Source of the DNA: Glycera tridactyla
Lineage: Eukaryota
Assembly: GCA_965644265.1 (NCBI GenBank)
Contig: OZ286466.1
Location: forward strand, 70,556,001-70,620,000
DNA length: 64,000 nt
Direction: 5' to 3'
The position numbers were made by a program, and so were the translations under genes. The notes under the pieces were generated by a model. That model saw nothing but the letters and a program-made list of their open reading frames with translations. It ran no database searches and had not been told where the DNA came from. Positions 406 through 44,646 of the stretch are shown here, in pieces (within the stretch, counting starts at the first letter, position 1; each line of letters starts with the position of its first letter).

Positions 406-645
406 CTATTGTGGTGCCACAGGCTCTGTTCAGTACCCATTGGTCTACATTTGGATGGTTGGTCTGGATGTTGTCAGACCAGTTAGGATCCAGATGCAAG
501 TAACACTTGCCATTAAAGTCAATGGCTAGACAAGACTGGTCATCGAGACAGGCCTTTTTACACTCCTCAGCGTTGGATGCTGATGGAACAACGATTCCAC
601 CAAAGGCTAGCTGGTTTGGGAAAGATTCCCATGAGATGCTACAGT
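406..645 (-). CDS. Exon E49: PAN/Apple-like domain, class B; the gene continues beyond the left edge
   Basis: AG/GT, 240 nt, open; ends in phase 1 with a donor and no stop codon. Confidence 0.87.
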
Positions 646-3600
646 CTGAAAACGGATGAATTTGAAATACAAGATGTATCCATAAAAAGATGGTTTGGAT
701 TGTGGAAGATGAGGACATGACCTGAATACATGGTACACACTTCAGAATGGTGGATAATTAGAAAATATATTCCGTGGAAATCTGGACAGGAGGATTACAA
801 AACCCATCGTATTCTATTAGTTCTTTACTTCCACCCAAGTTTTAGTTTTTGGAGTATGTGACACATATTGTGATAAAAATGTGAATTACCATCTGCACAG
901 TTTTTGTCCAGCACCCATTGGTCAACCTCAGGATGATTCGTTTGGATTCTGTCTGGCCAGTTAGGATCCACATGCATGTAACACTTGCCATTGAAGTCAA
1001 TAGCTAGGCAGGACTGATTATTCAGACATTCATTCTGACATTCCTGTACATTGGATGCTGATGGGACAACAATCCCACCAAATGCTAGCTGTGATGGGAA
1101 GAAATTCCATGTAATGCTGCAGCCACCAGCTGAAATGAATAAGCATGGGTTCATCAATTGCGGAGATATATGCATGTGAGGGTTCGTGACTTTACCCAGA
1201 GATTCTTATGTCGTAATATCTTGTTCAGGGTCTCTATAGATGGCAGCCACCAATGGGCGCGGGTCATTTTCTTTAAAGTGTTGCCATCGGGGATGATGTG
1301 GCCTAGGTGTAGCATCATCCCTTCTCTTCTTCTCTATATCTTTTGGAGTGGGGGGTTGAATGGAAACATACCTTGAAATTTCTCTATCATCTGTCTAAAG
1401 GCATTTTCTACCAAAATTACACTATCACCAGATTTCTTTCTCTTCACCTCTTTCCAATCCCTCTAAGCTTTTCTTATCTCTTCAGTGAAATGGTCTCAGG
1501 TGTGGGTAGCTGACGGTTTGCCTGTAGCAGATATTGTCACTATGCAAAAAGCAGGTACCAGGCACACCAGTTCTGGGTTACTAGGGCTGCGACTAGGTTA
1601 CTAGGTTGTGTGATGGCATTGTACTGCGAGCATAGGGCATACCATGATTGTAAAGCTGGCTAGAAGGTGACAGTTTGTCATTGAACACATTGGTTGAGTA
1701 TTCTCCGAATCTAATGCCTCTCCTAGTGTCAAGTGCTGCGCTTTGCAAAAAAAAAGCATTGCTATCAGACTTGAGTGTTAACTTCCAGCCAGTTACATAG
1801 CTAGATATGCCATCATTAGATTCACTTTTTTTCATGAAGAGTAGGTAGAGGTGTGTCTGAACTGTCAGCTACTTCAACTTGACAACTTCTCAGGTTCCCC
1901 ATCATCTTGTGTCCAGGGTTTGTGAGAGTGATGTCTGCAGTGGAGAGAACATCTAGCTTTCATTGACCAGGAACATACGGCATACATAACCCTGTGGGTT
2001 GATACATGCCGTTAAACCTCAAACAAACAAACGAACAAATCGTAATATCTCGCGTGAGTATATTTGACACAGATATCAATCAGGGCAGAATGCCTTAGAT
2101 CGAACCGATTTCATATGCGAAATCGTCTACATGTCTTTAATTATGTGACAATGCAATTGATACACTTTTTACCACTATTGTATCATGCTATATCATTTTC
2201 AGCAAACGTTATGCCATCCACCAACTATTTTGTTTCATATGTCTGTTGTGTGAAACATGGCCAGCAGAAATGAGGTGAATGCATCATCAGTCAGAGACGA
2301 TACTCCCGAATTCAGACCCTGCATTGTTGAGTGATTTGAGTGCACATAATTGAAGGAGACTGCATTCTAGGGTTTGGTCATAGCCAGAAAAGGGTTGCTT
2401 TGAGGAAGATAATTACCTATTGTGGTTCCACAGGCTCGGTTCGGCACCCATTGATCAACATTAGGATGGTTAGTTTGAATTCTGTCTGACCAGTTAGGAT
2501 CAACATGCATGTAACATTTTCCATTGAAATCAACGGCAAGACACGATCGATTGTTGAGGCAAGCATTTTTACATTCTTCGACTGTAGGGGCACTAGGAAC
2601 AACGATTCCACCGAAGGCAAGTTGATTAGGGAAAGATTCCCATGTGATACTACAATCAGGGGTCGCTGAAAATGAAGAGGCATATGTACATTCCTTATGG
2701 TTGTCAAGGACCTACTTGGTTCAAGCGTTGTTTCAGTTTCCATGAGATCTGTTATCGCGGTACAGCTCATTGTATTTCCTTCATTCCTGACTCATCACAA
2801 TGGGATGCATTTTTGCTGATAGCAAATTTTCGAAGTTGTCATATTGTTTAGATCAGAGTCATATCTCGAATGAACGACATTCATGAGTGTTTACCTGTGG
2901 ATCATCATGGAATCGAGAGCTGTGGATTGGTAGGATATTGTTTGTGTGTTTTCTTGGTTCTGGTGGAGAACTGGTTTGCATTCTGATCATCCGGTGATTT
3001 CATTTTTGTTTGCATTGACTTGGAGTCGGAAACCCCTTCAGCAACGTGCTCATTGAAATCACCATATTCTGGATTTCGTGCTGGTTGAGCGTGCGGTGCT
3101 GGGCAAGAAAAAGCAAGAATTACCTATTGTGGTGCCACAGGCTCTGTTCAGTACCCATTGGTCCACATTTGGATGGTTGGTCTGGATGCTGTCAGACCAG
3201 TTAGGATCCAGATGCAAGTAACACTTTCCATTAAAGTCAATGGCTAGACATGATTGGTTATTGAGACAGGCCTTCTTACACTCCTCAGCATTGGATGCCG
3301 ATGGAACAACAATTCCACCAAAGGCTAGCTGATTTGGGAAAGATTCCCATGAGATCTTACAGTCTGAAAGTGAACGAGCATGAATTACCAAACGTGTCCA
3401 TCAAAAGATGGTTCAGATTTGACACAAACTTTGGAATAGTGGATATTTAGGACATATGCTCCATGTTAATATGGACAGAAAGAGTATTCAATTTGTTTTC
3501 TACTTTCACCTCAGTTTATGTTTACAAAGTATGTGACACTCATAGTAACATGAATGTTTCATACGTCCATCCCAGTTTCTGTTTTCAGAGTATGTGACAC

Positions 3601-6600
3601 ATATTGTAATATGAATGTGAATTACCTTCTGACGCACACACTTTTTCCAGAACCCACTGGTCAACCTCAGGATGATTTGTTCGGATTCTGTCTGGCCAGT
3701 CAGGATCCACATGCATATAACACTTGCCATTCTATTGGTTCTTTACTCCCACCCAATTTAAGTTTTTTGAGTATGTGACACATATTGTGATAAAAATGTG
3801 AATTACCATCTGCACAGTTTTTTTCCAGCACCCATTGGTCGACCTCAGGATGATTCGTTTGGATTCTGTCTGGCCAGTTAGAATCCACATGCATGTAACA
3901 CTTGCCATTGAAGTCAATAGCTAGGCAGGACTGATTATTCAGACATTCATTCTGACATTCCTGTACATTGGATGCTGATGGGACAACAATCCCACCAAAT
4001 GCTAGCTGTGATGGGAAGAAATTCCATGTAATGCTGCAGCCACCAGCTGAAATAGATATCCATGAATTCATGAAATCGTGTAATTCATATCTGTGTGGAG
4101 TTTGTGATTTCATCATGAGAATCTTCACAATTTCTTAAGAGTGGTCGTTATATGACATCATTGCATCCTGAGATTTCAAGTTAGGGTGTATGGCAATGTT
4201 GAGGTAATGGGATAATTTTGTGTGGTAGTATCTTGAGTGAGTGTGTGGCACAATTATCGATCGTAGCAGAGTGCATTAGATTGAACTGATTTCATATGCA
4301 AGATTTTGTACATATCTGAGATCAGGTGACAATGCAATATCCTCTATACCCTAATGTTTCGTGCTATATCGTTCGCAAACATTTTGCCATCCATTAGGTA
4401 CTATACTCATATGTCTAGTTTTGTACAACAAGTGCATCTGATGTTTGACTACTGTGATATTGTGTATGGGGCACTCAGCAAAAAATGAAGTAATATTCTC
4501 CAAAAGGTCCAAGATTATGCTTTGAAGATGATTCCAATGAAACAAGTGTTATGTGATGAAACCTGTGTGTACACTCAAGAGTTGTGAGGGAAACTTTTCC
4601 TTCCGTGCTGCTGTCCTTTGGAACCATCATTGCGATCAATGCCTTTATTTTGATAAAATGCCACTGAGTACTTTTAAACAAACCAAAATGTTTTGATCAT
4701 ATTTAGTATGCTATTCTGGCTGTGAAAGATAGCGTTCCAGCGTGGTTACACAATTCATAATAGTATATCTCAGCCTATATCCTACATTTCCGCATTCCAG
4801 CGTGGTTACACAATTTATATAGTATATCTCAAGCCTATATCCTACATTATCATTTTTGTCATGTATTATTAATATTATCATTTTATTATGGTCAGTGTTG
4901 TTACTATTATCATCACGCATATATGTCTCCTTATGCTGCCCTGTTAATTATCTGTCCGTATATGGACAACTCTATCTGTATATGGATTTTAGCCAGTGTG
5001 ACCCCGACATATATATTTACGACTTGTCTCAGAAATGTCAACTTATGATGAAATTTAATATTACAAATTTTATTGTTGCTCCTTTTGACACCTGGCTTAA
5101 AGATACTCTGGAAATGGTCGTTCTATGGCGGCTAATTGTTTCTATCATTTTGAAATAAAAATGTCTTATCTTTGTCTTATCTCATGTGATGTGATTCTAC
5201 CATCAGTTAAAGCCCTATTCCACCCAATTCAAGACCCTCCATTGCCAAATTAGACATGGTGAGTTTGAGTGTAACTAATCAGAGAACATTGCATCTAGTG
5301 ATTCGTGTAGTGAAGAAATGCGTCAGTTTCGGAAATGGTTGAGAATGATAATTACCTATTGTGGTTCCGCAGGCTCGGTTCGGTACCCATTGATCCACAT
5401 TCGGATGATTAGTTTGAATTCTGTCTGACCAGTTAGGATCAACATGCATGTAACACTTTCCATTGAAATCAATGGCAAGACACGATCGATTGTTGAGGCA
5501 TGCATTTTTGCATTCTTCGACTGTAGGGGCACTAGGAACAACAATTCCACCGAAGGCAAGTTGATTGGGGAAGGATTCCCATGTGATGCTACAATCGGGA
5601 GTTGCTGAAAATAATGACAGATGTCTCTTCATGTTTTTATATTACTCCACCTAGGTTTAAAGTTAGATAGGAGTCTCATCATATTGCCATATGATCGTAT
5701 CATCGATATACTAGGCCTATTCGACTGGTCGGTTTCGTTGAGTACGGCCGGTCCGTTGACTACATTTTGTATTCGAGTGGCCGCTTAACACTTTTTCATT
5801 GTGTACGAACTCAACGGTCGTTTGACTATGTTGAACTCGTTAAACGAAACCTATTTGGTTGGGCTACGGCCGTTGAGTACATTGCTGTCAACACACATTC
5901 AACAAAACCGACCAGTCGAATAGGCCTATTATATGCGTGATTTCTAGATCATTCAAGTAAAGTCAGCTGACAATGAAGGTACATTGTAAATGTGACCCCT
6001 CATAGAACCAATTGAAAATTAGGTTGGCCCTTTGTAGAGGTACATTAGCTATTCAAAGACAATCGTAGTACACCCCGCAACATGAGAGACAGAGATATTC
6101 ATATAAGAACGACATACACTGATCCCGCCTAAAATCCTGGGAACAACTCATATGGCCTTGAATTTGTTGGATAAGATAGGATGAACCAAAATGAAACAGG
6201 GTTATGTTAAGGTTTTAGGTCCACTTTCTGCACTTGAGTAGGCTAAATCGGACCACCTGCCAAGGAGGAGCGAAGATGAAGGGTGAAACGTTCCTGCATG
6301 GTGGGACCGGGGATTGAACCCCGGACCCATTGCACGCCGGCCCAGCATGCTACCACTGAGCCACCAAGGCAGGCCCGTACACGTGGGATAGTGAATATTC
6401 GAGTTCGGATGATATCATTTCAGGGATCTTCTGCTGCAGTAATTTGAAAATCACCTGCTATGATTCAAGAATTTTTTTTAAACAAGCAGTAGATAGACAA
6501 AATTCAATTTTGATTACCTATTGTTGTGCCACATCCCCGGGTAATTACCCATTGGTCTACTTCAGGGTGGTTGGTTTGAATTCTGTCTGACCAGCTCGAG

Positions 6601-9600
6601 TCCACATGCATATAACACTTCCCATTGAAATCAATGGCTAAGCATGATTCGTTGTTGAGACAAGCTGTTTTACAATCTTCAACTGAGGATGCAGAGGGGA
6701 CAACGATTCCACCAAAGGCGAGCTGTTCTGGGAATGATTCCCATGAAACTGTACAACCAGCAGCTGAAAAGAGATAAGTTCTGGGTAAGAATGTATTCTA
6801 AGCATGATAAAATATATGGTTGTGTGTGCTGACTTCTGCTCCACGTGAAGGACAATTTAGCACTGTGTGATCGGTGATGGTGATTGATATCTCATTCTTC
6901 GGGTGTGGGTTAACCTAGCTATAGCTATAGACAAGTTATAGTAACGTTGATTACCTATTGTGGTGCCACATGCTCGGTTTACTACCCATTGGTCAACGTT
7001 CGGATGATTGGTTTGGATTCGGTCAGACCAGTTGGGGTCGACATGCATGTAGCACTTGCCATTGAAGTCAATGGCTAGGCAGGAACCATTGTTGAGGCAT
7101 GCATCTTTACATTCCTCAACATTAGATGCAGATGGAACTACAAGTCCACCGAATGCAAGCTGGTTCGGAAAAGAGTCCCAGGTGATACTACAATCAGGTG
7201 TTGCTGAAATCAGATCAATATACCGTGCTTCAACATGTGTGCAATCCATTCTAGTACTTGCAAACCTCCCAAGTGTCATTTCGTTTTATGCTTGGTAAAG
7301 GCTTCGTTTCGGTAGCATCAACCACAAGCTATGTGGTCGTGAATTCGTCCAAGGAATTTTTATAAATGTGAGAGAACTTGGTATGGCCATCATACTATGT
7401 CATTAAGCAGTTATAAATAATTCATACCAATAATAACACGAAAACCTCGATCATTGCTCATAGCATTTTGATTCAGGTGTGAGGAGCAATTTTTCGAAAA
7501 AGATTACGGTACTTCAAAACGATTGAATATTTGTGTCAAGTACAGATAATATGCGGAAGATATGCATGGAGCACATGCAATTTTACCTATTGTAGTGCCA
7601 CATGCCCGATGTAGCACCCATTGGTCCACATTTGGATGATTGGTTTGAATTCTGTCAGTCCAACTAGGCTCGACATGCATATAACACTTGCCATTGAAAT
7701 CAATGGCTAGACATGAAGTATTGGCTATACAGGCATTTTGACATTCCTGAACATTAGAGGCGGATGGGACAACAATTCCCCCAAAGGCAAGTTGCTTTGG
7801 GAATGCTTCCCATGAAATTCTACAGTCTGAAATCGAAATGACAGGGAGGATTAGGTTGCTTCTAGGCGAAAGCAGGTTTTATGTGTCAATATAGATATAT
7901 TTGGATCCATTTCAAGATGGTATAATTATAAACAGTCTAAATACATATGAAACACGAACAAGTCAAACTCTGAACTAATTTATATGATCGTGCTTTGTCA
8001 GGGTCCTATGTCTTGCTGGAAAGTTATGGCGAATGGACAATGCCATTCTTGAAAAATTATGAAGCCACCACTATGGCTCATTGTTTTTTATGTGTTTTAG
8101 GCCAAAGTATCAGGACTCGGCTTGTTATGGGGAGGAAGGTTACTTTGCAATCCAGTACAAATTGATGAGGATTGGGATGAGTGGTCGAATATTATTTTGT
8201 CAATTTGAATCCAGGTGTATGTCAACCAAAGACTGATGTCTATGACTAATATTTTGACATTCTTTAACAACAGGTGGAGATGCAACATGGTTCCAAAAAT
8301 TGTCAAGCCTTCCTCTGGAATAAATTCCCCGGATATTTATAGTCTGATCACCGTTTATGACTTCACACTGCAAATATTCTCTTCGATGTTCAATATATAG
8401 ATAAGGTATCTGAACCTTTGCACTCCTCTGGATACCTGTATTAGGTTTCCGTAACCTGATAGTTCTGTGCTACAGTACAAAGCATAGGTCCACAACCATC
8501 AACATACTCATATGTGTCAGCTGTCCTTTTGATAGAGTTATCATTGAATGATGAACTGGTTTTACAAAGTTAATTTAGAGGAGATGTTGATGATAATGGG
8601 TATAGATACAAGATGACAGAAACTTTGTGTCATGCCCTTGCATCTCACCTGAGAAGATGGCAATGGTGGGTTATGAAATCTCTGGTTACCTTTTGTGGTG
8701 CCGCATGATCGGTTCGGTACCCATTGGTCAACGTTTGGATGATTGGTTTGGATTTGGTCGGCCCAGTTAGGATCGACATGCATATAACACTTGCCATTGA
8801 AGTCAATAGCTAAGCAGGACTGATTGTTCAGGCAAGCATCTTTACATTCTTCAACATTCGAGGCAGATGGAACTACGATTCCACCAAAGGCAAGCTGATT
8901 TGGAAAAGAGTCCCAGGTAATGCTACAATCAGGTGTCGCTGAAATCAAATGAAAACAACTACCTCAAACATGAAATATGTCTAAATAATCTTATCAAACC
9001 CTTGGATATAGTAACCTGAAATGCTCAATATAAAAGTGCTATCACCTTATAAAGTCCAAACAGTGATGCATTTCAGGATTCTGCACTTACCTGGGAATTT
9101 ATTAATATGGACAGAAGTCATAGCTACCTATTTTCGTTGTCTATATTTAGTCCTGATAATGGCCATACCTGCATCCATCATCCTCAATCATTGCTAATTG
9201 CTCATCGCATTTAAGTGAGAATATCCCACTTTATCACAAATTAGCTTGGATTGCTTCGAGAATGAAAAATGAAGAAAATACGCATGTTAGTCATGCAATT
9301 GCTTTACCTATTGTTGTGCCACATGCTCGGTGCACAACCCATTGGTCCACATTGGGGTGATTAGTTTGTATATTGTCGGTCCAGTTAGGGTCCACATGCA
9401 TATAACACTTGCCATTAAAATCAATGGCTAGACATGAACTATTACTTATACAGGCAGTTTGACATTCCTGAACATTTGAGGCCGATGGGACAATGATTCC
9501 CCCGAAAGCTAGCTGACTTGGGAATGCTTCCCATGAAATTCTACAGTCTGAAATTGAAATCACATGGTTGTTTAAACATGTTCCTGAGATCAGGCACGCC

Positions 9601-14642: not shown

Positions 14643-14709
<67 letters not shown>

Positions 14710-32700: not shown

Positions 32701-35700
32701 TTTAATTCAATGGGAAATAATGCACGAGTAACGTACGAAGTATACTCAATCAATTTATGTACTGTAGGGCCTCAGGCTAGGCATGGAATCATTGTCCATA
32801 TCATCCTGTGAAGTTGCTGCATAGATATGATGGAAAATACAGATGCAAAGTGGTTGGCAATATTCAGTATCAATCAAATGAAAGTTCATGCAAAATCACT
32901 CTTTTCCACTGCAAACAGTGCTGAATTGACCGTACAGCGACAGTTGAATCACCTCAGAATTCGAATATATATATCATGCTTTACGAATCGAATAGTATCA
33001 AATACTGCCCCTGTCTTATATGCCGGACTGGATGGGAAGAAATTGATCCTTTCAATCTGAGTAAATACTGCCCCTGTCTTATATGCCAGACTGGATGGGA
33101 AGAGATTGATCCATTCAATCTGAGTAAATACTGCCCCTGTCTTATATGCCGGACTGGATTGGAAGAAATTGATCCTTTCAATCTGAGTAAATACTGCCCC
33201 TGTCTTATATGCCGGACTGGATTGGAAGAAATTGATCCTTTCAATCTGAGTGGATAATATCGAAAACTCCATTTACCTACAGTAGTACCACATGCCCGGT
33301 TCAGTACCCATTGGTCAACATTTGGATGATTCGTTTGGATCCGGTCGGGCCAGTTGGGGTCAACATGCATGTAGCACTTGCCATTGAAGTCAATGGCTAA
33401 GCAAGACCGATTATTGAGGCATGCATCTTTACATAGCTCAACATTAGAGGCAGATGGAACAACAATTCCATCAAACGCAAGTTGATTTGGAAAGGATTCC
33501 CAGGTGATGCTACAATCTGGAGTGGCTAAAATCAGATAAATATAATCTGTGTCAACTGATTTTCCATCAAACATGGCAATCACGTGGATTCAATATTTGT
33601 ATTTCTTCGAACATCTTGTAGACAATTTATGTAGAAACTTGAAGCAGAGGATTTTACAATTCACCCCTAACTGAGATTGATACTGCCGATATATTTGGAT
33701 ACTGGTGCTCGAATTTGAAATTGTTTGTATCAGATCTATCACACTGATATGAAAGATATCTGTTCTAATGTAAAGCAAGTCTCAGGAGCTTTAGACTTTG
33801 TTCATTGCTCCATATATATATTGACATTGATTGGGGAGAAATTGTCCCTATAGATTCTCATTGTGTACTGTGCAATGGCAAATTGATTGGTGTGTATTGG
33901 TTTGTTAGTTTTAACAAAAAAATGCAGAAGATAGTCATGAAGGACAGGCATTCGGTTTACCTATTGTAGTGCCACAGGCCCGGTGTAACACCCACTGGTC
34001 CACATTTGGGTGATTAGTTTGGATTCTGTCAGTCCAACTAGGCTCGATATGCATATAACACTTGCCATTGAAATCAATGGCTAGACATGACTGATTGTTT
34101 ATACAGGCATTTTGACATTCCTGTACATTCGAAGCAGAGGGAACAACAATTCCATCGAAAGCTAGCTGATTTGGGAATGCTTCCCATGAGATTCTACAGT
34201 CTGGAATTAAAATTACATTTCATTGAACAGGTAGTTGTCAAATACTCGTCACCCTTAAGGTGTGATAATATTCGTTTGAATCGAACCTTAACAATACCGA
34301 CATAGACAATATTAATAAAAAAAGTAATACTGACATCATGCCCGCGTAACTGACCAAGAGAGTTTAGAAAATACATTATGTTATCAAAGTAGTTTGGCTA
34401 GATTGAGTTATATTTTTTAATCATCAATTATGTCATATGAAAGTTTCGAAATTTGTTTCTATTCTTGGACCGATAATATTGCATCAGAACTCCATTAAAT
34501 GCGCATGGAATCAATTTCATTATTCAGAATTGCCATCCACAGTGGTACTAATAATGGTTTGTGCACATATAGTGAGCTGTGGAGCAAATTGTGTGGTGTG
34601 CCTGTCATGGGCATATAATTTACCTGAAGGGCAGTTTCTATTCGGGACCCATTGGTCAACTTCAGGATGATTGGTTTGAATTCTATCTGGCCAATCAGGA
34701 TCCACATGCATGTAGCATTTGCCATTGAAGTCAATTGCAAGACAAGATTGATTGTTTAGGCAGATATTTTGACATTCCTCAGGCGTGGATGCGGATGGGA
34801 CAACAAGTCCACCGAAGGCAAGTTGTGATGGGAAAAAGTCCCATGTGATGGTACATCCCCCTGCTGAAACGAATCCCGGATAAATCAATAAATATCTGAC
34901 CACTGGTTTCTCAATACAAAATGATTACTTCGCTGTTTGTAAGGGTATCTCAATCATATGAAAACAGAGGTACATGGGCATTTCGGATTACATTGAATAT
35001 TGAGTACAACTGCCGAGGTAAAAATCCCTCCTTCAATTTCAGTGTCTTCGAAATGCAGGCCATATATTGTATACTGGTCCTACTGTATCACTGATACTCC
35101 AATTCATTACAGAAGTGGACAGAACAAAGGATGATTCATGAATATCTGCATTCTTCGGAGATTTATAGAAAATCGAATGGAGTAGAGATCCAGGAAGCTG
35201 TGTGAGAAATTAATGCCAATTACCGATGGTAGTGCCACATGCTCGGTTCAGTACGAATTGATCGACTTCTGGATGATTGGTTTGGATGCGATCAGGCCAG
35301 GAAGGATCAACATGCATATAGCACTTGCCATTGAAGTCAATGGCTAAACAAGAACGATTGTTGAGGCATGCATCTTTACATTCCTCGACATTTGAAGCAG
35401 ATGGAACAACGATGCCATCAAAGGCAAGCTGATTTGGGAAGGATTCCCATGAAATGCTACAACCAGCAGCTGCAATGGAATTAATGTCATCAAAACATTC
35501 TGCTTTGGAACAATGTCTTCCCATGAAATGCTACAACCAGCAGCTGCAATGGAATTAATGTCATCAAAACATTCTGCTTTGGAACAATGTCTTCCCATGA
35601 AATGCTACAACCAGCAGCTGCAATGGAATTAATGTCATCAAAACATTCTGCTTTGGAACAATGTTTATGTTACAACTGATGTTCTCTACATCTGATGTTC

Positions 35701-38700
35701 TCTATATATTCATTCTGCCGAACAATGTTTGAATTGTGATGCAGAATCAAAGCATATTTTCGAGTGAATATTAGCGAAACTGTGGAAGAAACGCATATGG
35801 ACAGCCTGGCTTCACTACCTGGCTTGAGGTATTTTGATGTAGGGGTTATATACAAAGATTTAATGACTCCCCGAAATACTGAATTGCACTCGATGTATCT
35901 ATTACTACCATAAAATAATATGTAGACGAAGTAGTAATGGATCGCCAATCTACCCTCTGCCACTAATGATTTGTTATGTCGCTGAATATGAAAATATTGA
36001 TTACCTATTGTAGTTCCACATGCCCGGTTCGGTACCCATTGGTCAACATTTGGATGATTCGTTTGGATCTGGTTGGACCAGTTGGGGTCGACATGCATGT
36101 AGCACTTGCCATTGAAGTCAATGGCTAAGCAAGACCGATTATTCAAGCATGCATCTTTGCATAGTTCAACATTAGAGGCAGATGGAATTACGATCCCGCC
36201 AAACGCAAGCTGATTTGGAAAGGATTCCCAGGTGATGCTACAATCAGGTGTTGCTGAAAGTGTATGAACATAATCTTATTTTACAGTTTCCCATCACTCC
36301 AAGATTTGACCAATTAGATATTATTATCCTGATCATAGGCCTCCCCGAGTTCTGTATGATGCTGGATAATTTTCAGCTAGTCAGACTCAGTTACTTTTGG
36401 TATGATTGTGAATTGTATTAACTTAATTTTGTGGCCATTATACATCCTCTAATTCAAGCACCTCTTATTCAATAGCATCGATTTCGGTACTCTCTGTCAT
36501 TTTTTGGCAAACTGCAGTGAATCAACAAGATTTTCATGAATTAGCATCAATAAACCTGCACTGAGTCGAGATTAATGTATTTTTTTTTAGACGAAGGTCT
36601 GAATAGTTACAATATCGAACGATTCCAACAAATGGAGTGAACATTTCACAGGCTTGTCATATTCCCACCAGTCTGCATGGATGTTTGAATTGAATTTCAT
36701 GAATTCACCATGATGAGATCAATATTTTCAAAATTTCCTGATCAATTGCGAATGATTCAAATGATCTATAATATGAACCCCTATATATCAAGATAAATGG
36801 CCCCGGTCCACATCAGATATGGTAATGTGAATTGTCTTTTGAAGTCATAATTACTGTTATTTGTAGGTCCTTATGGATCATTTGGTAGGTCACATTCGAG
36901 CTTTTTGGATAATGATAACAATTACCTATGGTAGTGCCACAAGCTCGATTGAGGACCCACTGGTCAACATTGGGATGGTTAGTTTGGATTCGGTCAGACC
37001 AATTCGGATCAATATGCATATAACACTTCCCATTGAAATCGATGGCCAGGCATGACCCATTGTTAAAGCAAGCTGTTTTACACTCTTCGGCTGACGATGC
37101 TGATGGAACAACGATACCATCAAAAGCTAGCTGATTTGGGAATGACTCCCAAGAAACGCTGCAATCAGGAGTTGCTGAAAGTGAAAGAAATTGCAAGTGA
37201 TGAGTTCCTGCTATGTCTCTGGATTTGTTTATATACTATTTGTTCACTTCCCTTGTTCCAGTGAGGGAATCAATCGATTTCATGATTTACTCCCCAATTT
37301 AAAAGTGAGCTTTGATAAAGTAGTTTTCTCCTGTCCCACTTTGGGATTTCATGATTAGATTGACTTCACCATTGAGAAATGGAGTTTATGGACCAAACTT
37401 TGGACTTCTGGTTTAATTGCAACATGATGTTTAAATATTGTAGTAAATGGAAGAAAATGTACCTAATGTGGTGCCACAGGCCCGGGTTAGGACCCACTGG
37501 TCTACATTTGGATGGTTGGTTTGGATTCGGTCAGGCCAACTTGGATCAATATGCATGTAACACTTTCCATTGAAATCAATGGCCAGGCATGACCCATTGT
37601 TAAAGCAAGCTGTTTTACACTCTTCGGCTGACGATGCAGATGGAACGACGATACCATCAAAGGCTAGCTGATTTGGGAAAGACTGCCAGGACACACTGCA
37701 ATCTGGAGTTGCTGAAAGGGAAAGAAATTGCAGGCGATGAGTTTCTGATATATCTCTGGATGTTCCAATATACTAGCTATCTGTCAACTTTTGTGAATTT
37801 CGATTGGAGAAATAATTTTCCCTTGTTCCAGCATGATTTACTCCTGAATTCAAAACTGAGCTTCGATTGATGAAGTAATTTTCTCCTGTTCCTGTATCGG
37901 AATCAATTGATTTCATGATTTACTCCCCAATTTAAAACTGAGCTTTGAGTGATGAAGTAGTTTTCTCCTGTCCTACTTCGGGATTTCATGATTGAATTGA
38001 CCTCACTATTGAAAAATGGAGTTCATGGATCAAGCATTGGATTTCTGGTTTAATTGCAATGTCGTGTCTGAATATTATAGTAAATGATAGAAAATGTACC
38101 TAATGTGGAGCCACAGGCTCGGGATAGGACCCACTGGTCTACATTCGGATGGTTGGTTTGAATTCGGTCAGACCAATTTGGATCAATATGCATATAACAC
38201 TTTCCATTGAAATCAATGGCCAGGCATGATCCATTATTATAGCAAGCTGTTTTACATTGTTCGACCGACGATGCAGATGGAACAACGATACCATCAAAAG
38301 CTAGCTGATTTGGGAAAGACTCCCAAGAAACGCTGCAATCTGGAGTAGCTGAAAGTGAAATACATCGCAGGTGTAAATTATTCCATGCCTGTATGATTGA
38401 AACATTAAAAGATAGTTACCTAATTGTGTTCTCGTGTTGGTGAGTTTTTTTTTATGTGATAATGCGTACAGAAATAAAAGGTATGGTTTTATGATATATA
38501 TATTCAATTTGAACACGTCCAAGTTCATTTAAGCAATAAAGAGAGCATATTCGAATTCAAATATTTGTCTTGTGAGTACTTTCAGATATCACCTCAGTAT
38601 CACTACTTATGTATGTTTTTGTTCATTAACAGTGTGATGCTCTTCCTTTATGGGAAGGAATCATGAACTTACATTTTTTCTTTAAAATTTATTATAACTC

Positions 38701-41700
38701 AATCAGAAATTACCTCATCCATATCGATTTTTTATCGAACAGTTTCTCAAAAACATATATGAACAAATATATTACATTACCTATTGTAGTGCCACAGACA
38801 CGGTTCAGCACCCATTGGTCCACATTTGGGTGATTGGTTTGGATCTGGTCAGACCAGTTAGGATTGACATGCATGAAACATTTGCCATTAAAGTCAACGG
38901 CTAGGCAAGACATATCGTTCAGGCAGGCATATTGACATTCAAGAGCTGAAGATGCTGACGGAACAACAAGCCCACCAAATGCCAATTGATTCGGAAAATA
39001 TCCCCAATTGATGCTGCAGCCAGGTTCTGAAATTGAAGCGTACGTTATTGATAATGGACATTCCTTTGGTAATTGTCCCAAACTTTGTTGTTCAATTAAG
39101 AAGAAAAATATGAGCATTCACTTTAAATTTGCATGTATGACAATGAGTTAAGAACTTCAATCAGGTTCTAACCAACTTTGTTGTATAATTCAATAAAATA
39201 CTATAAGCATTTAGTTACTAAATTGGCATGTATGACATGAATTAAGAATTTCAATCAGGTTCTAACCAACTTTGCTGTATAATTCAGTAAACTAGTTTGA
39301 GCATTTAGTTACCAAATTTGCATGCATGACATGAGTTGTGAACTTCAACCAGATTCTTTCTCACTTTGTAGTATAATTGCATAAAACACTACAGGCATTC
39401 AGTTACTAAATTTGCATGTAAGACATGAGTTAGGAGCTTCAATCAGGTTCTAACCAACTTTGTCCAATCAGCAACAGAGTTGAGGTTTCAATAGATAGGT
39501 TTAGCTTCTGAAAGGTCAGATAGCTACTTTGAAGTTAGATAAGCAGCAATGTCGGATTAACATGCCATGACATAGCATCTAAATATTGATACTGAGAGGC
39601 AGTCCTGATGGCATTGTCTCCTAAACCTTATATGGGAGCAATTCACACAGTTATAGCTAGAAATATAATGGATTAGAACAAAGTATATTTAGCTTCAGTT
39701 TATCTAGTAGATTGAATGGATATATTACATCGAGATGTGTTATTCATAATTGCTAAAAGTACGAAATTGTCCATGCTCCGTAGACAAAGAAAAGAAAACA
39801 ATGTCCCCTTCTTGCTTTTCACTGAGATCACATTTCATGGCACCCTCCTGCAGCCAATTTGTTACACCTCGAACACACAAATGAACTGATATGCAACCCA
39901 ACAGCCAGACTGAAAATCTCCCATAAAGTAAGTGTCACAAGTAACTTGATGGGCAAACATATACAAACCGGTTTTTGGTCTTGGCTGGAAATAAAAGATG
40001 TTTTAGTTGTTCCCACAGACCCATGTAACCGTCCCCAAGAATTAGACCAAATGACAAAAAAGTCGGAATATCCATTTTGTTTGCAATTTCACATAGGCAT
40101 GATGCCAGAGACGATCACTTTCCTGCTCGCTCATAGTCACAGGCCATTGAGAGGAACTCTGAGATGATAGTGTGGGAAATTGTCCATAGTTTAACACTTT
40201 GTTGTGAAAAAAAACTGCTACGGAAATTTATACATGCTGGCATCCACAGCGGATTACATGAGACTAATCACATCATAAATATATTTCAGCTCTCAATCAG
40301 ATATCAAATGATGGCCAGTCTTTTACCAACCATATGTCAATATTCGAAATGGAGATAGCAGGTGAATTTAAATTCGATTTTGAACAAAAATATATATATT
40401 CAACTCAAGACGGGCAGGTCAACGCGAGTATTTTTTGCCATTAAGATTACAAATACAATACAACAGATTAACGACATCCAGCAAGAATTATAATATATTA
40501 CAATGGATTCAACTTTGCTAGATTCGTTTACATATGGTTGAATCAAAATTTCGTTGATTTCTTCATAGTTGTCGTTCAACAGTCCAAGTGAAGCATCCTG
40601 CATACAATACTTAAGAATTGATTTTGCTCCTCATCTTCGAGAAAGCGGAATTATCACCTGAGTTGCAACTTTTATGCCAGCGTTTGATTGATCATCTGGT
40701 ACTTTTATCATTATTAACTGAAAGGCTTACTTGAGGCATGATTAGGTGTACTTTGAAGGTCCGGATAGATATTGAGACTGAGATTGATGCTGCCAAAATA
40801 TTTGGATACTGGTGCATAAATTTTTCGTATCAGATCCCTCACACTGATATGAAATATATCTGCTTAAGAGTATAACATGTCTCATAGGTTGTAGGCTTTG
40901 TTTATTGCTCAATACATATTGACTTTGATGTTAGGAGAACTTGCCCCTTTAGATTCTCATTGTACACTAGGCAATGGCAAATTAATTGGTGTGTATTCTT
41001 TAGTTAGAAGTATAAAAAAGGCTTAAATTGATGGTTGCAGAAGATCCATGACAGTTTTTCATTAATACAGATGCCTGAACAAACTTGATAAACCCAACAT
41101 ACAATCACCTGAAAGGAGTCCAATCCAATCCAGCATTGAATGACATGTTTCCCGTAGACATTTCATGAATTAACACCAATCCCAGATTCCAGTGAACGGA
41201 CAGAACCCATTGACAAATTGTGTGCATTTGCAGCTATGCAATTCTGATCATTCACGGGCTGATGTATGTTCCTCGATTGTCTGATTTACTCATCACTGGA
41301 AAGTAATGGTAGTAGTGAATCCTCTCATAATTCTACTCACAGGTCTACATGTTTTCTTACTCGAAATATGTGATTAAGTGGTATCCATGCTGATTGAAAG
41401 GCTTAAATGTAAAATAAGGCTTAAGTTAATGGTTGCTAAAGATTCATAACAGTTTCTCATTAGTACAGATGCCTGAACAAACTTAACAAACAAGCATGAT
41501 TTGTGTTGATTTAAGATGAAAATACCCAAAAATAACTTTTTCAATTTTTCACTCAAATATTTGTCCATATTCGAATAATCCTGCCTAGATTGAAGATATG
41601 TTGAGCCCTACTCGATCAATCAATCTTTGATTAACACCACTATTTCCCCTGCGACAAATGCTATGAGTGATCCAGATACTATCAAAAGAGCCCATGGAGT

Positions 41701-42597
41701 AGAATTCATGATCAGAATAATCACATGAATGATGAGGCTGAATGAAAGCTAGAAAACTGAAAAGAATTTCAAATGTATGTTAATGAGTGCCTTTCCACTG
41801 TTGACCAACATCTTCCTCTGTACTTACTGGGTGTGGTTCCTGTAATTTTTGGCGTCGTGTTGCCTGAAATTTAGTTTGTTAAAAAGGTCATTTTGTCTGC
41901 ATGTGGTCCCTGCAATTTACTTTGTGGACAGGGTCGATTTTAATCCCATGATTAGCATGGATAATGTTAATTACAATCTGATGATTTGTAAGATCAAATC
42001 AGGTACAAAATTATCCAATATGATGCAATTCAACAAGTAACTCATCTATCAATCTTTGTACTACTTGTACTCCGCATGAGAATCATCTGCGAAGAAAAAT
42101 CAAATAAAGAATATTAATCATCATGGCATTGATTCAAGCTCATATTTCAAACAAGAGCGTGTCTTTTAGAGATACTTTTCACACATTACATTCAGTTTCA
42201 AGAGCTCAATTGATATACATGAAAATTAGAATATTGCATCACCTCGATCGTTCATTAGGCCATCAATTTTCTTCAACTATTCATCTCACGAATTTAATTG
42301 ATATTGGCAGATAAAAAGGGCATCCAATGATGAAACTGGACTTGAACCTACTTGTGCCTGTGCAATCTCGGTTTAGCAACCACTGATCGACATTGTCAGT
42401 ACTGGTTACTATAATCTGAGGCCAACCGGAACTGAAGTGAAGGAAGCACTGGGAAAGCTGATTGAAGTCTATGGCCTGACAGGACACATTTTGTACACAA
42501 GCAGCTTTGCACGCAGGTAGTGTTGTCATTGGTATATATAGCACAACTCCATAAGTGAGGCGCGCAGGAAGATTTTGCCAGCTGGAGCATCCACGTT
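406..42597 (-). CDS. Multi-exon gene (partial) encoding a giant tandem PAN/Apple-like domain protein; 49 domain exons, ~4,003 aa if all are spliced in; 5' start and 3' end not identified in the window
   Basis: 49 paralogous exons of 240/243/246/249 nt, each flanked by a pyrimidine-rich AG acceptor and a GT donor (mostly G|GTAA), all phase 1-1, all open. Six conserved Cys with C-x3-C-x5-C-x8-C core spacing, as in PAN/Apple domains. Many third-position differences with conserved protein sequence. Confidence 0.88.
890..1129 (-). CDS. Exon E48: PAN/Apple-like domain, class C
   Basis: AG/GT, 240 nt, open. Confidence 0.87.
1833..2040 (+). mobile_element. SINE-like/LINE-3'-end dispersed element, copy 1, with (AAAC)n tail
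   Basis: caggttccccatcatcttgtgtccagggtttgtgagagtg...catgccgttaaacctcaaacaaacaaac; homologous copies at 47.2, 55.4 and 59.4 kb. Confidence 0.7.
2417..2665 (-). CDS. Exon E47: PAN/Apple-like domain, class A
   Basis: AG/GT, 249 nt, translated manually and open. Confidence 0.87.
   Translation of the reverse strand, partial: RPLIVVSHGNLSLINLPSVESLFLVPLQSKNVKMLASTIDRVLPLISMENVTCMLILTGQTEFKLTILMLINGCRTEPVEPQ
3124..3363 (-). CDS. Exon E46: PAN/Apple-like domain, class B
   Basis: AG/GT, 240 nt, open. Confidence 0.87.
3626..3731 (-). pseudogene. 5'-truncated class C pseudo-exon (NGKCYMHVDPDWPDRIRTNHPEVDQWVLEKVCASEG)
   Basis: 3' half of the domain with an intact G|gtaat donor, joined directly to the intron downstream of E45; 106 nt, not a multiple of 3; no polypyrimidine tract. 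Confidence 0.75.
3807..4046 (-). CDS. Exon E45: PAN/Apple-like domain, class C
   Basis: AG/GT, 240 nt, ...EKNCADG. Confidence 0.87.
4733..4849. repeat. 60-bp tandem duplication
   Basis: ttccagcgtggttacacaatt...gcctatatcctacatt present twice. Confidence 0.8.
5356..5604 (-). CDS. Exon E44: PAN/Apple-like domain, class A
   Basis: AG/GT, 249 nt, open. Confidence 0.87.
   Translation of the reverse strand, partial: QLPIVASHGNPSPINLPSVELLFLVPLQSKNAKMHASTIDRVLPLISMESVTCMLILTGQTEFKLIIRMWINGYRTEPAEPQ
5712..5928. mobile_element. MITE with 28-bp terminal inverted repeats and a TA target-site duplication
   Basis: TA|GGCCTATTCGACTGGTCGGTTTCGTTGA ... TCAACAAAACCGACCAGTCGAATAGGCC|TA, 1 mismatch. Confidence 0.85.
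6200..6376 (-). mobile_element. tRNA-derived SINE (tRNA-Gly-like head)
   Basis: Minus strand GCCTTGGTGGCTCAGTGGTAG (A box) ... CCGGGGTTCAATCCCCGG (B box/T-arm) followed by an unrelated tail; acceptor stem does not pair. Confidence 0.75.
6518..6763 (-). CDS. Exon E43: PAN/Apple-like domain, class D-like (AAGCTVSWESFPEQ...)
   Basis: AG/GT, 246 nt, translated manually and open. Confidence 0.86.
6955..7203 (-). CDS. Exon E42: PAN/Apple-like domain, class A
   Basis: AG/GT, 249 nt, open. Confidence 0.87.
7587..7826 (-). CDS. Exon E41: PAN/Apple-like domain, class B
   Basis: AG/GT, 240 nt, translated manually and open. Confidence 0.87.
8144..8343 (-). pseudogene. Decayed class C pseudo-exon
   Basis: Remnants ASPPVVKECQNI and YIHLDSN*QNNIR..HPN..QFVLD align to the class C exon; contains a stop and deletions; lies at the expected C position next to E41. 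Confidence 0.62.
8690..8938 (-). CDS. Exon E40: PAN/Apple-like domain, class A
   Basis: AG/GT, 249 nt, open. Confidence 0.87.
9308..9547 (-). CDS. Exon E39: PAN/Apple-like domain, class B
   Basis: AG/GT, 240 nt, open. Confidence 0.87.
9693..10082. mobile_element. Probable MITE with 13-bp terminal inverted repeats
   Basis: AGGGGCACGTTTT ... AAAACGTGCCCCT; internal palindromes at 9950-9965 and 10000-10022; no clean TSD. Confidence 0.55.
10251..10499 (-). CDS. Exon E38: PAN/Apple-like domain, class A
   Basis: AG/GT, 249 nt, open. Confidence 0.87.
10913..11152 (-). CDS. Exon E37: PAN/Apple-like domain, class B
   Basis: AG/GT, 240 nt, open. Confidence 0.87.
11515..11723 (-). pseudogene. Decayed class C pseudo-exon
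   Basis: ttcag|CG GGA TGT start; remnants VEECQIVCFTDQPCL and YMHMDSY*P; frameshifts and stops; donor changed from GT to GC. Confidence 0.65.
12037..12337. repeat. 98-bp tandem repeat x3 that duplicates the E36 donor site
   Basis: ttac|ctgcagtagtgcca recurs at 12128, 12226 and 12324. Confidence 0.9.
12324..12572 (-). CDS. Exon E36: PAN/Apple-like domain, class A (triplicated donor)
   Basis: AG/GT, 249 nt, open. Confidence 0.84.
12895..13125 (-). pseudogene. Class C pseudo-exon with an open frame but lost splice sites and three lost Cys
   Basis: GDTISWHFFSSQQSFGVRAMPTVEECRNVGLNNHSCLAIDFNGEHHIHVD...; acceptor AG changed to CG, donor lost, 9-nt deletion. Confidence 0.75.
13372..13617 (-). CDS. 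Exon E35: PAN/Apple-like domain, class D
   Basis: AG/GT, 246 nt, translated manually and open. Confidence 0.87.
14169..14417 (-). CDS. Exon E34: PAN/Apple-like domain, class A
   Basis: AG/GT, 249 nt, open. Confidence 0.87.
14646..14729. repeat. (AG)n microsatellite
   Basis: Direct reading. Confidence 0.95.
14958..15197 (-). CDS. Exon E33: PAN/Apple-like domain, class B
   Basis: AG/GT, 240 nt, translated manually and open. Confidence 0.87.
15639..15878 (-). CDS. Exon E32: PAN/Apple-like domain, class C
   Basis: AG/GT, 240 nt, open. Confidence 0.87.
16189..16434 (-). CDS. Exon E31: PAN/Apple-like domain, class D
   Basis: AG/GT, 246 nt, open. Confidence 0.87.
17010..17258 (-). CDS. Exon E30: PAN/Apple-like domain, class A
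   Basis: AG/GT, 249 nt, open. Confidence 0.87.
17582..17821 (-). CDS. Exon E29: PAN/Apple-like domain, class B
   Basis: AG/GT, 240 nt, open. Confidence 0.87.
18269..18508 (-). CDS. Exon E28: PAN/Apple-like domain, class C
   Basis: AG/GT, 240 nt, open. Confidence 0.87.
18879..19124 (-). CDS. Exon E27: PAN/Apple-like domain, class D
   Basis: AG/GT, 246 nt, open. Confidence 0.87.
19702..19950 (-). CDS. Exon E26: PAN/Apple-like domain, class A
   Basis: AG/GT, 249 nt, open. Confidence 0.87.
20270..20509 (-). CDS. Exon E25: PAN/Apple-like domain, class B
   Basis: AG/GT, 240 nt, open. Confidence 0.87.
20879..21118 (-). CDS. Exon E24: PAN/Apple-like domain, class C
   Basis: AG/GT, 240 nt, open. 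Confidence 0.87.
21495..21740 (-). CDS. Exon E23: PAN/Apple-like domain, class D
   Basis: AG/GT, 246 nt, open. Confidence 0.87.
22320..22568 (-). CDS. Exon E22: PAN/Apple-like domain, class A
   Basis: AG/GT, 249 nt, open. Confidence 0.87.
22889..23128 (-). CDS. Exon E21: PAN/Apple-like domain, class B
   Basis: AG/GT, 240 nt, open. Confidence 0.87.
23549..23788 (-). CDS. Exon E20: PAN/Apple-like domain, class C
   Basis: AG/GT, 240 nt, open. Confidence 0.87.
24060..24180 (-). pseudogene. Deletion scar of a class D exon (orphan donor plus exon termini)
   Basis: Intron homologous to 18740-18878 ends in aattac|ctatt at 24152, followed within ~15 nt by catgaaatgg (D-exon ISW codons); the exon body is absent. 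Confidence 0.55.
24603..24851 (-). CDS. Exon E19: PAN/Apple-like domain, class A
   Basis: AG/GT, 249 nt, open. Confidence 0.87.
25274..25513 (-). CDS. Exon E18: PAN/Apple-like domain, class B
   Basis: AG/GT, 240 nt, translated manually and open. Confidence 0.87.
25951..26193 (-). CDS. Exon E17: PAN/Apple-like domain, class C (one extra codon, ...NCPSQG)
   Basis: AG/GT, 243 nt, open. Confidence 0.87.
26628..26876 (-). CDS. Exon E16: PAN/Apple-like domain, class A (6x block)
   Basis: AG/GT, 249 nt, open. Confidence 0.87.
27711..27959 (-). CDS. Exon E15: PAN/Apple-like domain, class A (6x block)
   Basis: AG/GT, 249 nt, open. Confidence 0.87.
28798..29046 (-). CDS. Exon E14: PAN/Apple-like domain, class A (6x block)
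   Basis: AG/GT, 249 nt, open. Confidence 0.87.
29885..30133 (-). CDS. Exon E13: PAN/Apple-like domain, class A (6x block)
   Basis: AG/GT, 249 nt, open. Confidence 0.87.
30966..31214 (-). CDS. Exon E12: PAN/Apple-like domain, class A (6x block)
   Basis: AG/GT, 249 nt, open. Confidence 0.87.
32056..32304 (-). CDS. Exon E11: PAN/Apple-like domain, class A (6x block)
   Basis: AG/GT, 249 nt, open. Confidence 0.87.
33000..33251. repeat. 63-bp minisatellite x4 just downstream of the E10 donor
   Basis: aatactgcccctgtcttatatgcc recurs at 33001, 33064, 33127 and 33190. Confidence 0.9.
33277..33525 (-). CDS. Exon E10: PAN/Apple-like domain, class A
   Basis: tttag acceptor, G|gtaaat donor, 249 nt. 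Confidence 0.87.
33961..34200 (-). CDS. Exon E9: PAN/Apple-like domain, class B
   Basis: ttccag acceptor, G|gtaaac donor, 240 nt, translated manually and open. Confidence 0.87.
34624..34863 (-). CDS. Exon E8: PAN/Apple-like domain, class C
   Basis: AG/GT, 240 nt, AGGCTITW...NRNCPSG. Confidence 0.87.
35224..35469 (-). CDS. Exon E7: PAN/Apple-like domain, class D (triplicated acceptor)
   Basis: cattgcag|CT acceptor, G|gtaat donor, 246 nt. Confidence 0.82.
35445..35663. repeat. 74-bp tandem repeat x3 that duplicates the E7 acceptor site
   Basis: cccatgaaatgctacaaccagcag|ctgcaatgg recurs at 35446, 35520 and 35594. Confidence 0.9.
36005..36253 (-). CDS. Exon E6: PAN/Apple-like domain, class A
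   Basis: AG/GT, 249 nt, phase 1-1, open. Confidence 0.87.
36926..37174 (-). CDS. Exon E5: PAN/Apple-like domain, class A
   Basis: AG/GT, 249 nt, phase 1-1, open. Confidence 0.87.
37463..37711 (-). CDS. Exon E4: PAN/Apple-like domain, class A
   Basis: ttcag acceptor, G|gtacat donor, 249 nt, open. Confidence 0.85.
38100..38348 (-). CDS. Exon E3: PAN/Apple-like domain, class A
   Basis: ttcag acceptor, G|gtacat donor, 249 nt, translated manually and open. Confidence 0.85.
38781..39026 (-). CDS. Exon E2: PAN/Apple-like domain (EPGCSINWGYFP...)
   Basis: tttcag acceptor, G|gtaat donor, 246 nt, open. Confidence 0.85.
39125..39462. repeat. ~94-bp degenerate minisatellite, ~3.6 copies
   Basis: aaatt(t/g)gcatg(t/c)a recurs at 39125, 39220, 39314 and 39408. 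Confidence 0.8.
42352..42597 (-). CDS. Exon E1: divergent PAN/Apple-like domain (ERGCSSWQNLPARLTYGVV...QWLLNRDCTGT)
   Basis: ttttgcag|AA acceptor, A|gtaggt donor, 246 nt, six Cys kept. Confidence 0.72.
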
Positions 42598-44478: not shown

Positions 44479-44646
44479 NNNNNNNNNNNNNNNNNNNNNN
44501 NNNNNNNNNNNNNNNNNNNNNNNNNNNNNNNNNNNNNNNNNNNNNNNNNNNNNNNNNNNNNNNNNNNNNNNNNNNNNNNNNNNNNNNNNNNNNNNNNNNN
44601 NNNNNNNNNNNNNNNNNNNNNNNNNNNNNNNNNNNNNNNNNNNNNN
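44479..44646. other. Assembly gap (N)
   Basis: N run. Confidence 1.

Follow-up and report, generated by a model that had tools for sequence, protein, structure and literature searches.

PAN/Apple modules occur in a handful of copies per protein, and in about a dozen at most in the cases that have been studied. The multi-Apple micronemal adhesins of apicomplexans have 2-11 modules, and in the vertebrate factor XI and prekallikrein genes each apple is split over two exons. The leech anti-platelet protein LAPP binds collagens I, III and IV (PMC7191736), and the PAN domains of LET-653 tether this protein to the luminal fibrillar matrix (PMC4970718). The window analyzed here (the whole stretch of 64,000 nucleotides of contig OZ286466.1 of Glycera tridactyla) contains what is probably one very large protein-coding gene, transcribed from right to left, with at least 49 PAN/Apple modules.

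All 52 module-like stretches detected by tblastn with one module as a query (span 407-42583) are on the minus strand. Boundary analysis showed that 49 of them are intact exons, each with an AG acceptor and a GT donor, in phase 1-1, with six cysteines and no stop codon. Their lengths are 240, 243, 246 or 249 nt, every one divisible by 3. The first-pass annotation, which was made from the letters of the DNA, had described 49 AG/GT-bounded, phase 1-1 exons of 240-249 nt with six cysteines each, and we re-derived this set exactly, including its ends at 406 and 42597. The exons and the related features are given below in the order of transcription, with A-D denoting the four main module types.

42707..42791, minus strand, candidate signal-peptide exon; ORF opening with ATG and a hydrophobic, signal-like segment, MMSLKFAIIMIICPSLVFA, 110 nt upstream of PAN exon 1
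42352..42597, minus strand, PAN exon 1, 246 nt; divergent N-terminal module, 41% identity to the others, PAN_1 21.2 bits
39027..42351, minus strand, longest intron, 3,325 nt; separates module 1 from the array
38781..39026, minus strand, PAN exon 2, 246 nt
38100..38348, minus strand, PAN exon 3, 249 nt; source module of the structure model
37463..37711, minus strand, PAN exon 4, 249 nt
36926..37174, minus strand, PAN exon 5, 249 nt
36005..36253, minus strand, PAN exon 6, 249 nt, type A
35224..35469, minus strand, PAN exon 7, 246 nt, type D
34624..34863, minus strand, PAN exon 8, 240 nt, type C
33961..34200, minus strand, PAN exon 9, 240 nt, type B
33277..33525, minus strand, PAN exon 10, 249 nt, type A
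32056..32304, minus strand, PAN exon 11, 249 nt; opens a young exon-plus-intron repeat of six copies with ~1.09 kb spacing
30966..31214, minus strand, PAN exon 12, 249 nt; one-exon repeat
29885..30133, minus strand, PAN exon 13, 249 nt; one-exon repeat, core same as in exon 14
28798..29046, minus strand, PAN exon 14, 249 nt; one-exon repeat
27711..27959, minus strand, PAN exon 15, 249 nt; one-exon repeat
26628..26876, minus strand, PAN exon 16, 249 nt; one-exon repeat
25951..26193, minus strand, PAN exon 17, 243 nt, type C
25274..25513, minus strand, PAN exon 18, 240 nt, type B
24603..24851, minus strand, PAN exon 19, 249 nt, type A
23549..23788, minus strand, PAN exon 20, 240 nt, type C; opens the higher-order repeat of four exons
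22889..23128, minus strand, PAN exon 21, 240 nt, type B
22320..22568, minus strand, PAN exon 22, 249 nt, type A
21495..21740, minus strand, PAN exon 23, 246 nt, type D
20879..21118, minus strand, PAN exon 24, 240 nt, type C
20270..20509, minus strand, PAN exon 25, 240 nt, type B
19702..19950, minus strand, PAN exon 26, 249 nt, type A
18879..19124, minus strand, PAN exon 27, 246 nt, type D
18269..18508, minus strand, PAN exon 28, 240 nt, type C
17582..17821, minus strand, PAN exon 29, 240 nt, type B
17010..17258, minus strand, PAN exon 30, 249 nt, type A
16189..16434, minus strand, PAN exon 31, 246 nt, type D
15639..15878, minus strand, PAN exon 32, 240 nt, type C
14958..15197, minus strand, PAN exon 33, 240 nt, type B
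14169..14417, minus strand, PAN exon 34, 249 nt, type A
13372..13617, minus strand, PAN exon 35, 246 nt, type D
12890..13114, minus strand, decayed pseudo-exon; two cysteines lost, no usable AG/GT pair
12324..12572, minus strand, PAN exon 36, 249 nt, type A
11519..11686, minus strand, decayed pseudo-exon; in-frame stops and a deletion
10913..11152, minus strand, PAN exon 37, 240 nt, type B
10251..10499, minus strand, PAN exon 38, 249 nt, type A
9308..9547, minus strand, PAN exon 39, 240 nt, type B
8690..8938, minus strand, PAN exon 40, 249 nt, type A
7587..7826, minus strand, PAN exon 41, 240 nt, type B
6955..7203, minus strand, PAN exon 42, 249 nt, type A
6518..6763, minus strand, PAN exon 43, 246 nt; isolated divergent type
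5356..5604, minus strand, PAN exon 44, 249 nt; opens the three-exon repeat
3807..4046, minus strand, PAN exon 45, 240 nt; three-exon repeat
3630..3731, minus strand, partial pseudo-exon; C-terminal third of a module only
3124..3363, minus strand, PAN exon 46, 240 nt; three-exon repeat
2417..2665, minus strand, PAN exon 47, 249 nt; belongs to the second copy of the three-exon repeat
890..1129, minus strand, PAN exon 48, 240 nt
406..645, minus strand, PAN exon 49, 240 nt; last in the window, canonical donor, open frame

Spliced in silico, the 49 exons gave 12,009 nt that encode 4,002 aa with no stop. The splice sites are strong throughout. The acceptors have TT at -6/-5 in all 49 exons and C at -3 in 48 of them, and the donors are GTAA in most, mostly G|GTAAT (GTAATT in 25). 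The introns are 191-1,309 nt long, except for that of 3,325 nt which follows the first module. A 94-bp tandem repeat (~4 copies, 79% identity, 39081-39463) occupies the 3' end of this first intron, just upstream of PAN exon 2. No runs of N are present within 406-42597. The start codon, a signal peptide and the stop codon are not carried by any of the 49 PAN exons. Since exon 49 (645..406) ends with a canonical donor and its frame is still open, the gene exits the window at the left edge, in agreement with the first-pass annotation. In the left flank (positions 1-405), only 84 nt could be aligned with a paralogous intron, at 70% identity.

On the strand of the gene, the only signal-peptide-like ORF upstream of PAN exon 1 is the one that starts with MMSLKFAIIMIICPSLVFA (42791..42707). 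It is a doubtful candidate for the signal-peptide exon: its sole phase-1 donor leaves a terminal T, so that splicing to the strong acceptor at 42597 would create the stop codon TAA, and the frame is kept only if a weak acceptor at 42624 is used. ORFs of this kind are expected by chance about once per 1.8 kb. A tblastn search with T1FVV8, P0001 (both described below) and 148 other relatives detected no C1q, VWA, FN2 or other domains of these relatives outside the PAN exons in the window, and no ZP domain was seen in the window either; the 3' end of the gene, which lies beyond the left edge, may still encode ZP, VWA or C1q domains, a membrane anchor or a protease. An Rfam scan revealed no RNA families in the window. 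The region upstream of the gene contains four N runs of 865 bases in total (44479-44646, 45803-46128, 49547-49686 and 62991-63221), which are flanked by simple CT/GT-rich repeats, and a 93-bp minisatellite at 56577-57504 (10 copies, 95% identity), which is open on both strands, so that ORFs of 340 and 347 aa arise spuriously. Arrays related to it, with periods of 93 bp and 31/124 bp, are present at 50224-50573 and 58247-58787. Between 60000 and 62000, the plus strand has a G-over-C skew of 0.37, and the minus strand contains low-complexity Pro/Leu/Ser-rich ORFs for which no homology was found.

The modules are PAN/Apple domains by sequence, profile and predicted fold, as had been proposed initially from the spacing of their cysteines. 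Five of the six modules tested matched Pfam PAN_1 (PF00024) with 24.7-29.6 bits, above the cut-off of 21.4 bits, and the divergent module 1 scored 21.2. The C-x3-C-x5-C-x8-C spacing and the two terminal cysteines on which the proposal was based are present in the modules: the 48 regular modules share C28-x3-C32-x5-C38-x8-C47 without exception, the terminal cysteines were found in 49 out of 49, and the distance from C1 to C6 is exactly 75 residues in 48 of 49. In a profile alignment, the cysteine columns of the modules coincide with the cysteines of kallikrein and factor XI. Moreover, the family profile matched, among solved structures, the heavy chains of plasma kallikrein and factor XI (~1e-10), LAPP (3e-6) and MIC4 (4e-5).

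The AlphaFold2 model of the PAN exon 3 module points to the same fold. It was obtained with an alignment of 103 sequences, composed of domain slices from the profile-search matches and of the modules of the window, and replaced a poor model (pLDDT 58) from a shallower alignment of 30 modules of the window itself. Its pLDDT was 93.9 and its pTM 0.83, and its elements follow the order strand-strand-helix-strand-strand-short helix-strand-strand. Foldseek comparison with the PDB placed LAPP first (1i8n; TMq 0.74, rmsd 2.3 A, 28% identity). The rest of the top 50 matches were nearly all structures with PAN/Apple modules, including the HGF N domain, the plasminogen N-terminal domain, the apples of factor XI and prekallikrein, SML-2 and MIC4. 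LAPP was also first in the search of the Swiss-Prot part of the AlphaFold DB, where LET-653 was among the matches, and the nearest clusters in the ESM Atlas were all PAN. Thus, the Pfam and single-module AlphaFold checks suggested in the first-pass annotation both supported its assignment. Because the terminal cysteines are located in the first and the last strand of the model, an Apple-type C1-C6 disulfide is likely; by alignment, the complete pairing would be C1-C6, C2-C5 and C3-C4.

The modules differ widely at synonymous positions and little in protein. Over all module pairs, the mean pS is 0.64 and the mean pN is 0.11, with a median dN/dS of 0.08 and a maximum of 0.27. Between the four main types, pS reaches 0.70-0.75, which is saturation (0.48 for the A-D pair), and pN is 0.11-0.16; within the types, pN/pS is 0.02-0.09 and the proteins are 97-100% identical. 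Among the 75 core positions, 34 are invariant in 48 modules and 45 are conserved in at least 90% of them, with their codons scrambled; one invariant serine is encoded by TCN as well as by AGY codons. In the paralogous copies of a four-exon unit, the identity of exons is 0.94-0.97 vs 0.75-0.84 for introns. As gene conversion would also homogenize synonymous sites, the identity of the modules is maintained by purifying selection on the protein, and the same conclusion drawn initially from the sequence is borne out by these values. Old tandem domains normally drift apart, keeping only their cores, and the retention of ~80% protein identity after synonymous saturation is unusual for them. About 60% of the positions, many of them polar, are kept in at least 90% of modules. 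Such near-uniform conservation suggests that all modules present one and the same face, to a ligand or to their neighbours, and that a shared ligand or a regular packing functionally constrains the whole surface of each of them.

The array grew in blocks. A four-exon unit is present in ~4 copies at 13.4-23.8 kb, one exon-plus-intron unit in six copies at 26.6-32.3 kb (~1.09 kb apart, intron identity 93-99.5%), and a unit of three exons twice, at 0.4-5.6 kb. These three block duplications, of 1-, 3- and 4-exon units, are younger than the old module types that underlie them. Their coexistence with three pseudo-exons identifies the locus, as judged from its sequence, as a birth-and-death array that is shaped by the unequal crossing-over of exon blocks and by exon loss. 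With its old types, nested 1/3/4-exon duplications and dying exons, the locus displays how giant extracellular proteins are constructed. Could the array be non-functional, i.e., an assembly artefact or a decaying satellite-like exon repeat? Exons 13 and 14, together with the introns around them, are 99.5-100% identical, which could result from the mis-assembly of a duplicate, and three exons within the array are decayed. However, between most copies 3-25% of the intron positions differ and synonymous sites are saturated, which no assembler would create, the array is free of assembly gaps, dN/dS is ~0.08, and none of the 49 exons has a stop or a lost splice site. We regard this explanation as highly improbable.

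The exon structure raises the question of whether all modules enter one mRNA. Any of the 49 exons could be skipped without breaking the frame, as they are symmetric (phase 1-1), so that the locus could in principle be a cassette or mutually exclusive exon array, whose mRNAs carry one module or a variable subset of them rather than encode a 49-module protein. We consider this improbable. Modules of the same type are 97-100% identical, and a choice between them would create almost no diversity; all splice sites are strong; and relatives hold 17-18 modules in a single ORF. Moreover, when the 10- and 12-mers of intron 1 were searched for as reverse complements (exact matches only), none was common to many downstream introns above the level of shuffled controls, so there is no sign of docking/selector pairing of this kind. 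A Dscam-like mutually exclusive array was rejected on the basis of this result and of the within-type protein identity. Instead, we favour the serial inclusion of all exons in one mRNA, which we infer from the strand, phase and strong splice sites common to all exons, from the many modules that the closest long relatives hold in one ORF, and from the lack of diversity that exclusive choice would give. Some exon skipping is possible, and would yield isoforms of differing length.

A profile search of 1.84 billion representative proteins with the modules gave 419 matches. The closest sequences (43-51% identity) were single-exon fragments from metagenomes and one draft assembly, and the best named matches were leech proteins. 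One module per phase 1-1 exon was also found in all three fragments that were checked (P0009, P0010 and P0012, three unrelated environmental or draft-genome sequences, each a short single-module member of the subfamily). Two longer relatives share a domain order. P0001 (L001 712-6621, JGI 3300036474) is an uninterrupted ORF of 1,969 aa on a 6.9-kb contig, in which 17 PAN modules are followed by a (PAPAT)n linker and then by C1q-like domains, and T1FVV8 of Helobdella robusta (2,524 aa) has 18 PAN modules, then C1q, plus a VWA domain. This PAN-then-C1q order suggests an uncharacterized family of PAN arrays that end in C1q. In two further relatives, L002 (Logan SRR14460572) and L003 (JGI 3300033572), 5-6 fibronectin type II domains precede 4-5 PAN modules, with Thr-rich mucin-like linkers.

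Nothing near an orthologue with 49 closely related modules was found in the representative protein library. A search for close homologues of one 82-aa module, which covers only proteins of 45-143 aa that share exact words, returned none, a metagenome scan with the module alignment yielded no confirmed locus, and no description of a giant annelid PAN protein was found in the literature. The statement of the first-pass annotation that ~50 apples are far beyond known examples is right for studied proteins; the longest relatives, from Helobdella, Octopus and the dinoflagellate Polarella, are uncharacterized predictions with 17-21 PAN modules. Its authoring model had not recognized a named gene, and the homologue and literature searches likewise returned no named or studied orthologue.

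The part of the product encoded in the window, 4,002 aa and 442 kDa, has a pI of 4.5, and every module is net negative. The linkers from C6 to the next C1 have 3-8 residues, most commonly GTTIATPD. In 46 of 49 modules, an N-x-S sequon immediately precedes C4, and the sequons total 74. For the part encoded in the window, a mucin was rejected, as its linkers are just 3-8 residues long, unlike the long O-glycosylated Pro/Thr/Ser-rich stretches of mucins. These properties point to an acidic, presumably glycosylated, multivalent extracellular binder. We think it probable that this one giant gene encodes a secreted multivalent binder or cross-linker of extracellular matrix or adhesion, with PAN modules acting in series. 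The product would be a secreted glycosylated chain of rigid, closely spaced, disulfide-locked beads, and would bind or cross-link an extracellular partner that is itself repetitive (collagen or a glycan, for example) in a multivalent manner and with low affinity. Nearly the same residues in each module would present the same binding or packing face each time, and avidity would rise with the number of modules. The site of action could be the cuticle, mucus, a tube or another apical matrix. The collagen binding of LAPP may be a hint to the ligand, although at a similarity of only 28% it is not confidently transferable. The matrix tethering by the PAN domains of LET-653 is a second precedent for such a role (PMC4970718).

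The main functional rival is that the same giant protein is a soluble humoral immune agglutinin, i.e., a lectin for microbial glycans, and not a structural matrix protein. Some PAN/Apple domains are indeed lectins, Sarcocystis SML-2 (solved with a galactose analogue) and Toxoplasma MIC4 are among the fold matches, and high valency fits agglutination. On the other hand, immune recognition families usually diversify, whereas here the modules are held near-identical by purifying selection, and the closest characterized relative binds collagen rather than sugar (PMC7191736). We consider an agglutinin unlikely, if worth keeping in mind, and prefer the matrix or adhesion binder. A bolder version of the latter, which strikes us as rather doubtful, is that the gene extends to the left to ~100 modules and more than 0.9 MDa, and that its product is a main structural polymer of annelid cuticle or mucus, with near-identical modules bound periodically along the giant cuticle collagen or a glycan polymer as a cross-tie or ruler; LAPP would then be a salivary single-module offshoot. 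If the product is a major component of cuticle, mucus or adhesive, it would be a new biomaterial protein and would place the origin of LAPP in a wider context.

Among known systems, LAPP of Haementeria officinalis (PDB 1i8n, UniProt Q01747) is both the best structural match and the best single-sequence match in the PDB. It is a secreted annelid protein and shares with the modules the C-terminal motif P-N-V-x-Q-W-x-L ... A-C. However, LAPP has a single PAN domain and, as a small protein of the saliva, is specialized in blocking collagen-mediated platelet adhesion, in contrast to the at least 49 modules encoded here. Factor XI and plasma prekallikrein resemble the modules in the aligned C-x3-C-x5-C core and C5/C6 positions, in the profile match (~1e-10) and in the modelled fold, but have four apples arranged in a disc and followed by a serine protease, and their C4-C5 spacing is longer. 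Additionally, while vertebrate apples are two-exon units, one exon corresponds to one module in this gene. Toxoplasma MIC4, Eimeria MIC5 and Sarcocystis SML-2, which appeared among the structural and profile matches, are likewise built of serial Apple modules and act as multivalent adhesins or lectins, but they are parasite invasion proteins of another kingdom-level lineage, and their modules are mutually divergent.

The PAN-ZP proteins, such as C. elegans LET-653 and Drosophila NompA, are similar in that their PAN domains anchor them in a luminal or apical matrix of fibrils (PMC4970718), but they contain 2-5 PAN domains and a ZP polymerization domain, for which the window, ending before the 3' end of the gene, has no counterpart. 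The nearest in architecture are the uncharacterized arrays T1FVV8, T1FVK1 (769 aa), T1FVK0, P0001, Octopus sinensis XP_036361601 and Polarella glacialis A0A813KS19, which are tandem PAN proteins belonging to the same subfamily, their modules being joined by linkers that are short or rich in Thr. They have 9-21 modules vs at least 49 here, the modules are 20-50% identical to those of the window, and the C-termini of T1FVV8 and P0001 carry VWA and/or C1q domains, for which there is no exon in this window. Multi-PAN secreted proteins are thus known; what is new in Glycera is the scale, the PAN-only architecture with short linkers, and the intensity of selection on every module.
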